A stretch of 62,918 nt of DNA, filler included, from Perkinsus chesapeaki ATCC PRA-425 (taxonomy: Eukaryota > Protista > Perkinsozoa), in the NCBI GenBank assembly GCA_013115145.1. It is 14 parts of 14 records of this genome, joined end to end, with 100 filler letters (N's around TTAATTAATTAA, not from the genome) between each part and the next. Parts side by side here need not be neighbours in the genome. Positions count along the whole stretch, not along the records: positions 44,469 to 50,793 come from JAAPAO010001096.1; 13 more parts are not named here. One strand, written 5' to 3'. Position 1 is the first letter of the stretch; every line of letters begins with the position of its first letter. The position numbers and the translations under genes were made by a program. The notes beneath the pieces are model-generated. The model had not been told where the DNA came from. It did not search any database and was given only the letters and a program-made list of their open reading frames with translations. Positions 44,369 through 50,793 of the stretch are shown here, piece after piece.

Positions 44369-45774
44369 NNNNNNNNNNNNNNNNNNNNNNNNNNNNNNNN
44401 NNNNNNNNNNNNTTAATTAATTAANNNNNNNNNNNNNNNNNNNNNNNNNNNNNNNNNNNNNNNNNNNNAAAGTTGTTGACCTTTCCTTTTGTAGACCGAG
44501 TGAATTGAATTATTCAAGATATGCGGGTTATGGTGACCCTCCGAGTGGCACGTGATGGCTGGACTCTTGAATGATTCAAGGTCGGCGCGTTTTTGCACGT
44601 GACCGTTATTTACAAAAATCATCAAAAATCAACGAATAAGCATTTCGTACAAATTAAATTTAGCCCAGGGGTGAAATAGGACCTAAGCTATCATATTAAG
44701 TGAAAAAAAATGTAATCAATTAGTTACCCCTGTACCACTGGGACAAGTCCAACTATCCGGCTACAAGTAACTATCGCGGTTCGAGTTATTACCACACCAA
44801 CGGTAGCCACTATGCTGATGACGACACTAACTCTGGTCACCATGAGAGCAACTATTACAGTAATGGCTCTGATAGCTCTCATACCCCCTCTGACAAGGCC
44901 GATGATGTCAAGACCCAGATCATCATCTTGCACTTTTAACTATGTGCAATTGCGTTGATGGTACCAATGGTCGGGGATGAATGATTACTACAGTCTTTCT
45001 ATACCGAATTCCCCTCATTTTTCTACAAGTTACTAACTTTGTAAACTGTCCACCATAATACACAGTTTCATAGAGACTTAATGTGCTTTCTTGTCGTGGG
45101 TTCCAAATTTGTCCAGCATTTGTCAAGAAGTGAGCCCTGAACGGGACATATGTAATAATGCCATGATGGGAATGCCAGCATGATGATGGCATGACCGACC
45201 AAGACTTAGTGGCTAAGCTTCCGAGTTTGAGCTCGCGTTACGTAATACGTAGCCCTTCACTCCTCAGTTCGCGGACTCAGCGCAGTCGATAGTACCATAG
45301 ATTCAATACTAGCAAACTCGGATACCACTCCGGAATTCGGTCCCGCTATAAAACAAGCAACTGCAACTGCAAGAACGAGAAGGAGCGGAGCAGCAGCAGC
45401 AGCAACAGCAGCGGCAGCATCAGCAGCAACAGCAGTGGCAGCAGCAGCAGCACCCGGCGGCAGATGGAAGGATCTGGAGAGGATGTTATAATGGGAGAGT
45501 TGGATGATGATAGAACTAGTGGTCCAAATGTCGTTGTAGCCGAATTCGCTACGCCTCGTAGCGACTGGAGCTCCGACTCGTACGGCATGGTTGTCCCTTC
45601 ACTACAGGGGTCATCATCCGTTCGCCTTTCTCCTTCCGTTTTTTCTCCTCGTTCTCCGTGTTGTTCTGACGTCTCAGGCTCTGAGACGTCAGGACTCGCT
45701 AGTGATACTCGAAGTTCCGATGTCGGAACTTTCTGAACCTTCGAGTATCAATTCGTCTATCGCGCCACCCCGCG

Positions 45775-47073
45775 ATGATGCGCTCGAAATACGGCGACTA
45801 TGACTTTGACGCTATTTTCGTCTGCATCCGTCCCGAAGCGCTACTTGCCTACTCCCCTTTATGGTGGACGCTAGACATTAGACGTTCGCGATTTAGGGAC
45901 CTTCCCCCGTCAGTGATAGGATTTGCTTCCGCTCCTGTTAGTTTGTTCGTGGATCACGACTTTCCAAAGGAGCAGTTCTGCAAAGAATTGCGATCTCGTG
46001 GTCACATTGTCTTTGAGAACCCTCATGAGCAATCCGTCATTCCGGGGGTGGTCAGTCTCGACTCGAGGGTAATCTACGATGCTTATATGGCAACGTCGTA
46101 TCCGAACCAAAACGGGTTCCTATACGCAGCTAGATATGGCATGAAGAGTAAACTCCGCCCTTATGTCTTCAGTACTTTCGACCGATACACGTTTTCTAGC
46201 GACACCCGTCTTGGTGAAACTATTTACGATATCGGGAAGATATTCAAAACTGAGAATATATGGGTGTTTCGTCGGGCTGTCCAGAGTAAGAAGCAGTACA
46301 AAGTCCTTGACAAGTTGGGTGGACTTGATTATGTGACTGTACAATTTACAACTTCTTACTCAAATTCGTCTGATAAGTGGCCTCTCATTGATGTGGAGTA
46401 TACGTTTTACTTCCGTTTGCGTCACGTAATCAAAGCGTTGTCTAGCATGAACTTCAGCGTGGCAACTACACGCTCCAGGTTTCGCCAAATGCTAGACAAC
46501 TTTACTCTACATACGAAGCTTTGCCGGGTGAAGGAGAAGGACGTTGGTGGATACCGAATTGAATGCCGTTTCCGCGTACAACATCGTTCTAGTCCTTCGA
46601 TCCGGGAAGCTGTAGATTGGTTGCTGGCGCGTGATAAGTTTAACCTCGATTCATACCCGGATTTAAGTTTTCGAACTGTAAAGTTCGCGGACTATCTAAG
46701 TTTAACCGACACAGCGCTCAAGGTAGCCGAAAAGCTTCCACTGGCCAGTGGGGATAACAGAAATGCTCTCCCTAAGGACCTAAGCAATTTTTCAGCTTAC
46801 TTGATTAACTTGTTTGGTGAAACTTATAGTCACGCGCAACAACTTTTCGATAAGGGTCGCGAGGCTTATCATTTTTATTATCGTATTTATAACGAGGACG
46901 TAGTTTTACATGATAATCGACCTAGTTCAGCTTCCCATGACGCTATAAATCCTGAAGACCTCGTTGTCAACACTCCAGAACCCGATATGGATGAGACATC
47001 GAGGGCGCCCGAGAGAGCCCAAGTCGTACTTGATGACGATTTGGCGCTGGACCTTTATAGAAGAGTCCTCTGA
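45775..47073 (+). CDS. 432-aa unknown domain protein (copy A), 5' part of a probable fusion with OTU
   Basis: Long ORF with GGYRIECRF motif; C-terminal third homologous to 17995-18246 on another contig. Confidence 0.85.
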   Translation: MMRSKYGDYDFDAIFVCIRPEALLAYSPLWWTLDIRRSRFRDLPPSVIGFASAPVSLFVDHDFPKEQFCKELRSRGHIVFENPHEQSVIPGVVSLDSRVIYDAYMATSYPNQNGFLYAARYGMKSKLRPYVFSTFDRYTFSSDTRLGETIYDIGKIFKTENIWVFRRAVQSKKQYKVLDKLGGLDYVTVQFTTSYSNSSDKWPLIDVEYTFYFRLRHVIKALSSMNFSVATTRSRFRQMLDNFTLHTKLCRVKEKDVGGYRIECRFRVQHRSSPSIREAVDWLLARDKFNLDSYPDLSFRTVKFADYLSLTDTALKVAEKLPLASGDNRNALPKDLSNFSAYLINLFGETYSHAQQLFDKGREAYHFYYRIYNEDVVLHDNRPSSASHDAINPEDLVVNTPEPDMDETSRAPERAQVVLDDDLALDLYRRVL

Positions 47074-47921
47074 CGCCGACCCTTTAGCGGAAAGAAGAAT
47101 AAAGTAGGCTTGATCGCCTATTCATTCAAATCTACACTGCTAAACAAGGGTGAAAAAAGGTGTCCAAGACTTTCAACAGCTACGCATCGGCCATGCGAGA
47201 TATTCTCGCCAAGTTTGGGGCTAGTTGGAGGGCACATGTTGTGCTATATGAAGGGGACGCGTCAAAGAGAAGAGTATTCAAGGATGTAGCCTGGGGTTTT
47301 AGTGGTAACGTGTTACAGCCCGCTCACGAGTGGCGTAACATGCCCGCTCAAAACACAGACGCATACCCGACTTACTGGCTGAGGACGGATCAGACAGGTA
47401 AATATACATGGAGCCTACGTAACAAGGTCTTCAACCGTGTTGTAGTCCCTGGAGACGGAAACTGCATGTTTTACTCTGCGCTGATCTCAGTCAAAGAACT
47501 CTCTGGGCGTTTACCGAACTTTTTAAGGGATAAGAATGAGGCCCTTGCCCCAGGAATTCTACGTGAGAAAGTCTGTGATTACCTTGGAACCCATCCTCCG
47601 GATGCGGCTACTTGGGCAGCTCAACTGGTATCTGACATTGAGCAAGCAGATTTTCGAACACGAGGATTGCCGTTAAAGCCAACTTGGGAGGAGTATGTGA
47701 AAAGCATGCGACATCCCAAAGCCTGGGGAGGGATAAAGGAGCTTCATGCTATTGCAGCATTGTTCGAGAGACGAGTATACCTTCTACAACTTGCCAACGG
47801 GGCTTCCCACAACCTCGTAAAGGTACAGGAGTACGGAGAGGAAAATCTCAAAGAACCGCTCTGTTTGTTCTATGATGGCATTTGCCATTATAGTGCCCTC
47901 ATTGAATCCTCTAAGAAGTAA
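47074..47921 (+). CDS. OTU-like cysteine protease domain, 3' part of the same gene
   Basis: VPGDGNCMFYSA (Asp/Cys, Cys ~47463), WGGIKELHAIA, YDGICHYSAL (His ~47886). The linker RRPFSG..GLIAYS continues after the TGA at 47071 and matches copy B. Confidence 0.9.
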
Positions 47922-48838
47922 AGGTATTCTTCTGGGTTCGGGTCGGTAGCTGGTTGGACTCCCCTTGTGTTATAGATATTTTTTGTATTATAGTTGTATT
48001 ATTTGTTTTTGTTTCTTTACTCAAGTATACTCTTATCTATGGCCACTTATCCATTCTGTTGTACATAACTGTATCACCGTTTTTATTCCATTTTATAAAA
48101 TATTGTCACGTCTGGCATCCCCTCTTCGCCCGGTTTCATCGTGAATATATTGGATGAAATGGAAAATGTTTTCATAAAAACTGAAATGTCCTTAATCGAG
48201 CGTATCTTAATAATCTTAATATCTTTGCTTGAATCAATGCCTACGTGTTATCAAGCTCCTCGGAGAGGTATGCATCTTCGGTGACCTTTCAGGCTCCCGC
48301 TGCTGAAGAGGCAAAGGACGCCGTACCGGTTGAGGAGACTAAGCCTGAAGCCGAGGAGGAAAAACCTGCCGAGGCCAACGAGCCGCCTGCGGTAGTTGAG
48401 GAAATTAGGAAACTGGAAAAGTGTTTTGCAGGGAACTGACGAAGCTGCTGCTGCTGCTGCGGATGGTGCTGATGGAGGTGATGCTGCTTCTCCACCAGAG
48501 GTAGTAGTGAGGGGGTGAGGGATGAAGTGGAGATTGAGTTATGTTAGGGAGAGTAATTTATTGAATTTGAATTTACTAAAGGATATGGCATGTTGTTGTT
48601 GAGGATGTGATGGTGTTTTGTTGAAGTGTATTTTATGAGGGGGAACAAAGGGATCAATGGGAAGATTCCCTATAGGGTACATGATTCTTATAATTGTATT
48701 TATTTCCTATTTTTCGTAGTGCATCAGCACCTCTCCTTCGATCAGGCAGCAGGTGAGTGCCAGTATAGGAGTATAGCAGCGGGCCGCTGAGCTGCTATAC
48801 TGAGGCCGGATTCCGGGTCAGTATGATCCATGTGCTGC

Positions 48839-49396
48839 TCACTTCGGGCGGCCACGTGCTTTGGGGCCGAAAGTCAGTAGGTCTTCGATGCACACTCCAG
48901 GTAAGCCGTAAGCATCAAGCGTATTGCCTTCGAGGAAGGTCAGCGCGATAGTATGCTTGCAGGGCGGTTTCCTCGCATCATAGCAAGAGCAAGCCATTGA
49001 CTCGTCTCTGTCGACCAGATAGATATTCTGTACCATCATTTTGAAGTCGTCGAAGTCCACCTATGGCGGAGTTTCTGCAGAATCTAGAATCCTGCCCAGG
49101 AAGCGTTGAACCATGCAATCCAGTGTTTCTCGGTTTCCCGCCGCATGAGCTAGCTTGTCTTCCACAATGACATAATATTTCTGAGTTGAGTCTACATATA
49201 CCACACTCCAGTTCTTTTTGTTCAATATGTATCTCTCAGCCCATTTTGCGCCCTGACGGGCTTGTCCAAGATTGAGCGAACAAGCAGGGCTGGGATCATC
49301 GGTATCTTTCGACTCGCTCTCGCAGTAGCGTTGAAGCTCTTTCAACAACGCTGGCACGCTTGAAGTTGTCCGCATCTTACCTATAAAGCATGACAA
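48839..49396 (-). mobile_element. SWIM-finger fragment, probably the C-terminus of a MULE-type transposase
   Basis: CSCYDARKPPCKH (SWIM C-x-C...C-x-H) followed by RGRPK. The two ORFs are in frame, separated by one TAG. Confidence 0.65.
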
Positions 49397-49409
49397 AATA
49401 GAAAGAAAG

Positions 49410-50091
49410 TAGAACTGCTACCTCAACTAGGTCTACAACTAGTTTTATTAGAACTAGAACTACTACAAGTAGGACTACTACAACTAGGACTACTACAACT
49501 GGGACTACTACAACTTGGACTACTACAACTAGGACTACTACAACTATAACTGCTACAACTAGGACTACTTCAACTAGGACTACTACAACTAAAACTACTA
49601 CAACTGGGACTACTACAACTACGACTACTTCAACTAGGACTACTTCAACTAGAACTGCTACAACTAAAACTACTACAACTGGGACTACTATAACTAGGAC
49701 TACTTCAACTAGGACTACTACAACTAAAACTACTACAACTAAAACTACTACAACTCGGACTACTATAACTAGGACTACTACAACTAGAACTACTACCACT
49801 AGAACTGCTACAACTAGGACTACTACAACGAGGACTACTACAACTAGAACTGCTACAACTAGGACTACTACAACTGTAACTGCTACAACTAGGACTACTA
49901 CAACTGGGACTACTATCACTAGGACTACTACAACTAGAACTACTACAACTAGAACTGCTACAACTAGGACTACTACAACTAGGACTACTACAACTATAGC
50001 TGCTACAACTAGGACTACTACAACTAGAACTACTACAACTAGGACTACTACAACTAGGACTACTACAACTAGAACTGCTACAACTAGGACT
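49410..50091. repeat. 15-bp minisatellite (AGGACTACTACAACT)n
   Basis: About 45 slightly variable units. Confidence 0.97.
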
Positions 50092-50793
50092 CAAGAGATC
50101 CTAAGAGTGAAAAAGGAAAATAAACATTACTGTATCCTCTCAGTGGATGTCGCAGACGCCTTCGGATCAATATCACATGAGGGGATAATAAAAGCACTGG
50201 AAGAAAACAACGAAGAGGAATTGACGATACGGTGGATAGAAAAGTGGCTGAAAAACCGCAGCAGCTATGGGCACTTCATGGGAGAATGTCAAGGAAGAAG
50301 ACCCAGAGAAGACAGAGGGGTAGCACAAGGAAGTGTAGGGGGACCGAGGCTCTTCACAGCGGCGATAGATCACAAATTAGTAGAGGCAGAAGGATTAATT
50401 ATGAGAAAACTAGAGACGATCCTGAAGATTTGCAGTGATAACATAAGAGTGAGAGTATTAGCTTTTGCGGATGATGTAAGTATACTAATTGGGTTTAAGA
50501 AGAAGCTAAAAAATGTCGACTACACACGTATAAAGCAAATTGCGGAAGATGCGATGAATCACCTCTTTCAAGACATATCCCTGACGCTGGATCCAACAAA
50601 AGGACAATGCCTCACCAACATCGGCCCAAAGGAGAACAGGGGAGGCCAAGGAAGCCTACGCCTTCTTGGGTATGATATAACAGACAGTGGGAGCTGGAAA
50701 AAGCATATCACAAGAAGACTGAAAAAGCCAAGGCGATAGGCATGATGGTCCGAAGATTCCTACGCAGCTCATATGGAGCTCCCCCGGAGGCGA
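50092..50793 (+). mobile_element. 5'-truncated non-LTR retrotransposon reverse transcriptase
   Basis: LSVDVADAFGSISH, WIEKWLKNR, GVAQGSVGGPRLF, LAFADDV, LRLLGY. A 1-nt frameshift near 50725 continues as AKAIGMMVRRFLRSSYGAP. Confidence 0.9.

Follow-up and report, generated by a model that had tools for sequence, protein, structure and literature searches.

The window analysed here is a 62,918-nt stretch of DNA joined from 14 parts of the genome of the protist Perkinsus chesapeaki; one part, positions 44469–50793, is the entire 6325-nt contig JAAPAO010001096.1 of assembly GCA_013115145.1. On the plus strand of this piece, at 45775–47921, lies a dead copy of a dispersed, intronless and decaying gene family that occurs almost only in Perkinsus, a parasite of oysters and clams, and was formerly under selection. 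We tentatively interpret the family as the protein-coding remnant of a low-copy selfish gene of the mobile-element type, a reading to which we give a probability of about 40%. Judged from its frames and their relatives, the intact protein would have had about 715 residues, in which a basic core of orphan type, an acidic spacer and a basic linker led up to a C-terminal OTU domain with Asp, Cys and His in place. Core and linker together make up an orphan family not described before, whereas there is nothing unusual about the OTU part.

The broken gene and its domains

Mechanical finding of open reading frames (ORFs) resolved 45775–47921 into two plus-strand frames in different phases. The ORF list, the translations and homology together identified them as one broken gene that spans core, spacer, linker and OTU. 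In relatives from P. marinus and P. chesapeaki, core and linker are read through without a break; measured against these, the window copy is interrupted by a single in-frame stop and a single frameshift, neither of which falls within the core or the OTU catalytic domain. Because homologous coding sequence continues through the stop and the frameshift, the alignments identify these as true breaks rather than as an intron, and because of them we classify the copy, from its sequence, as a pseudogene. It cannot be translated as a single protein and most likely has no function today. An earlier note on this DNA had described an intronless unit of about 715 codons. This description holds for the unit of homology, which spans 45790–47936 in comparisons with the P. 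marinus and P. chesapeaki copies and extends no further, but not for an open frame. Since the copy is dead, it is not an active gene for replication or transposition, the role that the note had suggested for the protein.

To estimate selection, we compared the window copy with its closest paralogue, a minus-strand copy on another P. chesapeaki contig (L002). The ratio of nonsynonymous to synonymous divergence (dN/dS) was 0.11–0.35 for each aligned segment separately, with dS of about 1–2. The coding signal was far above chance. Such ratios in every segment indicate that purifying selection acted on the protein through most of its history and that the breaks came late.

In the database searches and structure predictions described below, the two window frames were used separately. 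The OTU cysteine protease (deubiquitinase) domain occupies 47427–47900 on the plus strand and matched PF02338 with an E-value of 1.2e-12 (48.9 bits against a cut-off of 23.3; residues 97–240 of the downstream frame). Residues D99, C102 and H243 of this frame, encoded at 47454–47456, 47463–47465 and 47886–47888, aligned with their counterparts in yeast OTU1 (PDB 4boq), which bears out the intact triad noticed previously. The triad was also retained in a full-length P. marinus copy (L001), in its partial duplicate (L006) and in the minus-strand L002 copy. Deubiquitinase activity is predicted from the domain. The best PDB sequence match of the OTU part was 7jms_A, a viral-type OTU chain labelled 'Replicase' (E=2.6e-4), followed by yeast OTU1 (E=3.4e-3) and then, at weak E-values, by nairovirus L-protein OTU chains. 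A word-based protein search with the OTU frame found nothing.

The core (45793–46914, plus strand; residues ∼7–380 of the upstream frame) was delimited by profile search, alignment and tblastn. It comprises ∼375 residues, is also present in the ∼25%-identical paralogues P0006, P0008 and P0016, and has an isoelectric point (pI) of 9.1 in the window copy and of 9.1–9.4 across the family. Residues kept across members with ∼25% identity are Y121-G-x-K124, Y151-D152-x-G and G182-G183, together with Y307, G326 and G348. Column counts over the six long members added the motif Y212-x-R214-x-x-H217-x-x-K/R220 (46408–46434, plus strand), which the structure model places where a strand ends and a helix begins; this motif was retained in the L001–L004 copies and was gone in two wrecked copies, L007 and L008. 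The GGYRIECRF strand (46546–46572, plus strand), recognised by alignment and column counts, is modelled as a beta-strand at residues 259–268, and its G259, Y260, R261 and E263 (G-Y-R-x-E) did not vary in any family member. Apart from the wrecks, every copy has kept the invariant core residues and the OTU triad.

An acidic spacer (46915–47028, plus strand; pI 4.2) follows the core. It is poorly conserved, as seen from gappy alignment columns, and is predicted to be disordered, with a predicted local distance difference test score (pLDDT) below 50 at residues 381–422. The basic linker domain (47029–47426, plus strand; pI 9.9), of ∼130 residues, connects the core to the OTU. Its conservation, claimed beforehand, was confirmed by alignments and by its presence in the OTU-less paralogue P0006: tblastn detected it with the C-terminal part of P0006 against the window piece, L001 and L002, and with the downstream frame against L003, which carries P0006. 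The linker had no match in Pfam. The core had none in Pfam, PDB, PHROGs, NCBIfam or the BFVD viral structures, in keeping with the earlier view that the large N-terminal domain could not be assigned. Rfam gave no match, and the literature, searched also by locus tags, held nothing related to the family.

Family members, their decay and their surroundings

A word-based protein search retrieved two relatives only, P0002 of P. chesapeaki and PMAR008784 of P. marinus. A HMMER profile search of 1.84 billion (1.84e9) representative proteins added P0006 (857 aa) and P0008 (511 aa) of P. chesapeaki, both ∼25% identical, as well as a P. marinus fragment (P0012), a JGI metagenome protein (P0016) and two Logan fragments. 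Profile-search matches in fish, a moth and bacteria were rejected as chance likeness in a ∼67-residue tandem repeat, summed over many repeats. By these sequence searches the family is found almost only in Perkinsus; the sole true relatives outside it were the metagenome protein and the two Logan fragments, and no viral protein or viral contig matched apart from the weak OTU similarities.

P. chesapeaki has three OTU-type copies on two contigs, the window copy and two copies on L002. The minus-strand L002 copy is close to the window copy (72% nucleotide identity; 76% amino acid identity over 211 aa) and, lying on another contig of the same assembly, confirms the diverged homologue reported previously. 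These two form subfamily A, while L001 and the plus-strand L002 copy form subfamily B, and both subfamilies are represented in P. chesapeaki. In P. marinus we found the full-length copy L001 and the 96%-identical partial duplicate L006, and in sample SRR12548988 the two deletion-ridden wrecks L007 and L008. All copy numbers are lower bounds, obtained from called genes plus a few contigs per Perkinsus genome.

Two paralogues are intact. P0006 consists of core and linker without an OTU; P0008 has the core only; its 511 codons form a clean frame, with ordinary WD40 and DUF155 genes on its two sides. They share an N-terminal CPxCG...H...C motif, which was read by eye and had no significant Pfam support. 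Also by eye and without Pfam support, the metagenome protein P0016 (L005 28–1437) has a basic Myb/SANT-like C-terminal stretch, and the gene next to it (L005 1722–2573, minus strand) ends in a similar way.

All five OTU-type copies seen in the two species were broken, 5′-truncated or internally deleted. L001 is in three pieces, corresponding to at least one frameshift and one stop. On L002, the minus-strand copy is missing roughly its first 146 codons and has at least two changes of frame; the plus-strand copy has at least three and is cut off by the contig end. In L006 everything upstream of the linker is gone. Substitutions between L001 and L006 were distributed 11/12/12 over the codon positions, and this even split indicates neutral drift.

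Similarity between copies begins at about codon 7. It stops 15–25 nt past the stop codon in the comparisons of the window copy with the minus-strand L002 copy and of L007 with L001; between L001 and L006, the 96% block extends ∼80 nt past the stop, with a further short block downstream. An AT-rich 20-nt motif lies 60 nt after the stop of the window copy (47981–48000, plus strand) and recurs 54 nt past the stop of both P. marinus copies. Allowing three mismatches, it had only three matches in 96 kb on both strands. The identity of 18 out of 20 bases was reached in none of 300 block shuffles. The motif is conserved at a fixed distance from the stop despite saturated synonymous sites, and it lies right before the end of the first 96%-identity block shared by L001 and L006. 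It may be a signal of the 3′ untranslated region (3′-UTR) or for poly(A) addition, or else a terminus of the unit.

Upstream of the start of the window copy, three hairpin-type inverted repeats lie within 250 nt (45533–45577, 45663–45695 and 45703–45750); one has 15-nt arms, a 3-nt loop and a TGACGTC core, and another has perfect 12-nt arms. They were not conserved ahead of the P. marinus or Logan copies. The gene is flanked, ∼3 kb apart and in inverted orientation, by an upstream (AGC)21 microsatellite (45389–45452) and a downstream (CTG)n run (48444–48491). Considered as terminal inverted repeats (TIRs), these CAG/CTG runs were dismissed as simple repeats absent around the other copies, and they are probably incidental.

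Family members are intronless, whereas the host genes next to them in L001 and L004 are rich in introns. Copies are found either on short contigs with many repeats or in gaps with few genes, beside transposon scraps: in the window piece an RVT_1 (reverse transcriptase, RT) fragment and a weak frame of SWIM type, in L003 an rve domain and in L006 DDE_3. Neither flanks nor neighbour genes common to the copies were detectable by blastn or tblastx, which is weak evidence against synteny because the contigs are short and the divergence is high.

Downstream of the window copy, 48269–48868 has a strong positive GC skew (0.34–0.41), and a short Glu/Pro/Ala-rich frame within it (48245–48439, plus strand) had no family match. 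Two adjacent minus-strand frames follow at 48839–49396. In one of these, a weak SWIM zinc finger falls just short of the cut-off (PF04434, E=0.0015) and the sequence RGRPK lies at the C-terminus; this may be a scrap of a MULE-type transposase. The stretch 49433–50091 is a 15-nt minisatellite of ∼44 copies (85% matches) that creates long artificial minus-strand ORFs; it was not retained as a shared feature, its match near P0006 (L003 8962–9074) being just a (GTA)n run. Directly after it, the RVT_1 fragment (50107–50739, plus strand; E=4e-13; best PDB matches to R2-type non-LTR proteins) runs toward the contig end. The public annotation places the OTU frame and RVT_1 in one 706-aa gene model, which is probably a chimeric artefact. 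P0006 is likewise surrounded by minisatellites, with 34–154-nt units (L003 7387–7635, 8656–8891, 9472–9830 and 13090–13458), some of which have short words in common, inverted, on the two sides of the gene; an rve integrase gene lies 8 kb upstream of it.

Enzyme classes considered for the core

We modelled the core with AlphaFold (AF2) from an alignment of eight sequences. The best model reached a pLDDT of 62.5 and a predicted template modelling (TM) score, pTM, of 0.50, the other four scored 38–48, and a second model, of residues 108–385, was worse (pLDDT 50.3). Foldseek comparison of these poor models (pLDDT 62.5 and 50.3) with PDB and BFVD returned nothing below E=0.04, that is, noise only, and RNase H2A, RdgC, DnaK, stomatin, I-CreI and RepDN were mixed in the lists. 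The structural route proposed for the core gave poor models and no significant fold match.

The R-x-E-x-R of the GGYRIECRF strand had been likened to the metal-binding strand of Rep_trans initiators. Rep_trans proteins have four conserved strand motifs, RxDxAxD, TxYxG, RxYxK (catalytic) and RxE, the last of which lies on strand 11 and binds metal through its Glu (PMC4797284). The R-x-E alone was present and conserved in the family; RxDxAxD, TxYxG and RxYxK were absent from all six long members, and PF02486 (Rep_trans) had no match at E≤10 in any of eight family members. The modelled GGYRIECRF strand is preceded by long helices and not by a hairpin partner strand carrying the catalytic Tyr. As to the crescent-shaped, two-module beta-sheet that characterises Rep_trans, the RepDN structure 4cwe_A had the highest TM-score in the PDB Foldseek list, yet was not significant (rank 26, E=0.59, probability 0.15, TM 0.23/0.32, root-mean-square deviation 17.9, with the model of pLDDT 62.5), and it was absent from the best 50 matches listed for the second core model. 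With one motif out of four, no PF02486 match and 4cwe_A at noise level, the likeness did not survive, and on the profile and motif tests we rejected a Rep_trans or HUH initiator. It is scarcely credible that the core is a Rep_trans-like rolling-circle initiator whose R-x-E-x-R strand binds metal and which has a built-in deubiquitinase. What speaks for that proposal is the invariance of R261-x-E263 on a predicted beta-strand, the top TM-score of 4cwe_A and the three upstream hairpins; no HUH is conserved, however, and the hairpins are not conserved in other copies. The core resembles RepD and RepSTK1 in having an R-x-E pair on a beta-strand and a beta-rich basic domain, but differs from them in that three of the four defining motifs, a hidden Markov model match and a significant fold match are all missing.

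For HUH or Helitron Rep-Hel proteins there was neither a conserved HUH column nor a Rep or helicase Pfam match. DDE/rve had no Pfam match, and hhalign against the rve integrase from L003 gave a probability of 0.7%. Tyrosine recombinases (YR) of the Crypton/DIRS type had no Pfam match either. These enzymes carry the catalytic set R-K-HxxR-H/W-Y in that order, and the conserved core residues (K124, D152, R214-x-x-H217, R261 and Y307) are out of this order. Pfam scans and motif columns thus agree with the earlier note that no HUH, DDE, RT or YR motif is visible.

An RNase H-like or DDE core was rejected as a firm identity: RNase H2A was among the top PDB matches, but with E-values >0.08 and TM ∼0.1. 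As a weak lead, the predicted order of elements (a strand with D152, a hairpin, helices, a strand with E263, a helix, a strand, and a helix near a mostly acidic position 306) may recall an RNase H-like fold, although no score supports it. DDE and RNase H-like enzymes carry three invariant acidic residues, placed on beta1, on beta4 and in the helix after it. Both D152, acidic in five of the six long members (His in P0016), and the invariant E263 are on predicted strands; the acidic position at ∼306 is not invariant. There is an outside chance that the core, with its invariant Tyr, Asp, Arg, His, Lys and Glu, is an unrecognised catalytic nucleic-acid-processing domain, for example a very divergent RNase H-like domain or a tyrosine nuclease. 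On that reading it would establish a new eukaryotic class of mobile element that is almost confined to Perkinsea and equipped with its own deubiquitinase, and the zinc-finger paralogues would be domesticated or autonomous relatives.

Origin of the family and comparison with known systems

If the family descends from a selfish gene, its layout would resemble that of transposase-plus-protease fusions. An N-terminus that is zinc-finger-like, with Cys and His, in some paralogues would be followed by a basic core that probably binds or processes nucleic acid and then by the C-terminal OTU, whose role would be to strip ubiquitin off host factors or off the protein of the element itself. Copies would have spread as the reading frame with a short 3′ tail and little more, would have stayed functional for a time, and would now be decaying. 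The earlier suggestion of a selfish element or an endogenous virus is compatible with these data in so far as the family is lineage-restricted, intronless in an intron-rich genome, dispersed among transposon debris with no detectable neighbours in common, and mostly decayed; termini and viral similarity were not found.

Several observations weigh against a selfish origin. No RT, DDE, HUH, YR, helicase or Rep family was detectable in any member by Pfam, motifs or hhalign, and both structure models were poor, with all Foldseek matches at the level of noise. No TIRs, long terminal repeats (LTRs), poly(A) tails, target-site duplications or conserved 5′ flank were present around the window copy, L001 or L004. 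Of the expectations about termini and copy number, none regarding termini was borne out; copies proved few, but without detectable synteny. The copy number is low, and the truncations and the dispersal rest on small numbers because few contigs per genome were inspected. Two paralogues without an OTU are intact, and one of them, P0008, sits among ordinary host genes. Finally, IMG/VR contigs, searched with the core alignment and with the OTU frame, and JGI metagenome contigs contained no relatives.

Because of the low copy number, the missing termini and the intact OTU-less paralogues in ordinary gene neighbourhoods, it is nearly as likely that the family is a lineage-specific host family subject to birth and death. 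An ordinary Perkinsus protein, for example one associated with chromatin or DNA, would have gained an OTU in one subfamily, and the OTU-type paralogues would be turning into pseudogenes in repeat-rich regions. The divergence of P0006 and P0008 (∼25% identity) and the position of P0008 between WD40 and DUF155 fit this explanation, as do the few copies and the missing element termini. Subfamilies A and B, both within P. chesapeaki, are old, with saturated synonymous sites and dN/dS well below 1, and the conserved motif past the stop fits a shared 3′-UTR signal. A host family is harder to reconcile with the breakage or truncation of all five OTU-type copies in two species, with intronless genes in an intron-rich genome, with contigs that are short, repeat-rich and littered with RT, rve and DDE remnants, and with the lack of detectable synteny between species. 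The word-based protein search, moreover, found no annotated homologue beyond P. chesapeaki and P. marinus, other Perkinsus proteomes not having been checked directly.

Many RNA viruses and large DNA viruses carry OTU proteases. An unlikely alternative to both a selfish gene and a host family is an OTU-bearing gene from an unknown Perkinsea virus, integrated more than once and now decaying. The unit is intronless, patchy in distribution and decayed, and the viral-type chain 7jms_A ranks slightly ahead of yeast OTU1 as a match of the OTU part (E=2.6e-4 against 3.4e-3), but these matches are too weak to separate a viral from a cellular origin. A study of P. olseni reported endogenous elements that resemble Mononegavirales (PMC12548735). 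In the present family, however, no RNA-dependent RNA polymerase, capsid, helicase or other viral hallmark was found in or beside any copy, the core had no BFVD match, IMG/VR held no relatives of the core or of the linker-OTU part, and PHROGs was empty; OTU-less paralogues with zinc-finger-like N-termini in the host genome also argue against a viral gene. Very improbable is the reading of the unit as the first reading frame of a non-LTR retrotransposon whose RT fragment lies 2.2 kb downstream. The RVT_1 fragment at 50107–50739 is on the same strand and has R2-type best PDB matches, the public 706-aa model joins it to the OTU, and two copies are 5′-truncated with their 3′ ends retained. Against this, minus-strand SWIM-type frames and a 660-nt minisatellite separate OTU from RT, no RT lies near any other copy (L001–L008), and homology between copies ends 15–25 nt (two comparisons) or ∼80 nt (L001/L006) past the stop. 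Linkage with the downstream RT, seen at no other copy, was accordingly discarded.

Whichever origin is correct, a Perkinsus-specific orphan family consisting of core, linker and an optional OTU is now defined, one copy is recognised as dead and one public gene model as probably chimeric, and the Rep_trans lead does not hold. If the core proved to be a new kind of enzyme for transposition or replication, Perkinsus would harbour a eukaryotic mobile element of a new class. The family would then also represent another independent recruitment of an OTU deubiquitinase by a selfish element and would bear on the recurrence of ubiquitin-removing proteases in transposons and viruses.

With cellular and viral OTU deubiquitinases (yeast OTU1, 4boq; nairovirus-type), the family shares the Pfam OTU domain, the Asp/Cys/His triad and an aromatic-Gly-Gly region, but the similarity is weak (E=2.6e-4 to 0.2), and the orphan core and linker are partnered with no other OTU in the databases searched. 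Because none of the tested features that define them was found, we do not place the family in any named transposon or virus family. An OTU domain at the C-terminus has precedents in Ginger1 transposases and in some Helitron proteins (PMC2836005). Ginger1 DNA transposons, described by Bao, Kapitonov and Jurka in 2010 (PMC2836005), have a Gypsy-type integrase core (YPYY, H2C2, DDE, GPY/F) and 45–270-bp TIRs, whereas the Perkinsus family has no rve/DDE family match and no TIRs. Common to both are one long, intron-poor frame with a nucleic-acid-processing core, presumed in the case of Perkinsus, followed by a C-terminal OTU (PF02338), a unit of 2–4 kb, and a low to moderate copy number with many dead copies. 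Helitrons are defined by an HUH Rep and a helicase, neither of which is detectable in the Perkinsus family; the likeness to animal Helitrons and Helentrons would lie in the OTU protease as an accessory domain on a selfish element. By analogy, the plan of a DNA-binding or DNA-processing core with a C-terminal OTU would be the one seen in Ginger1 and in some Helitrons.

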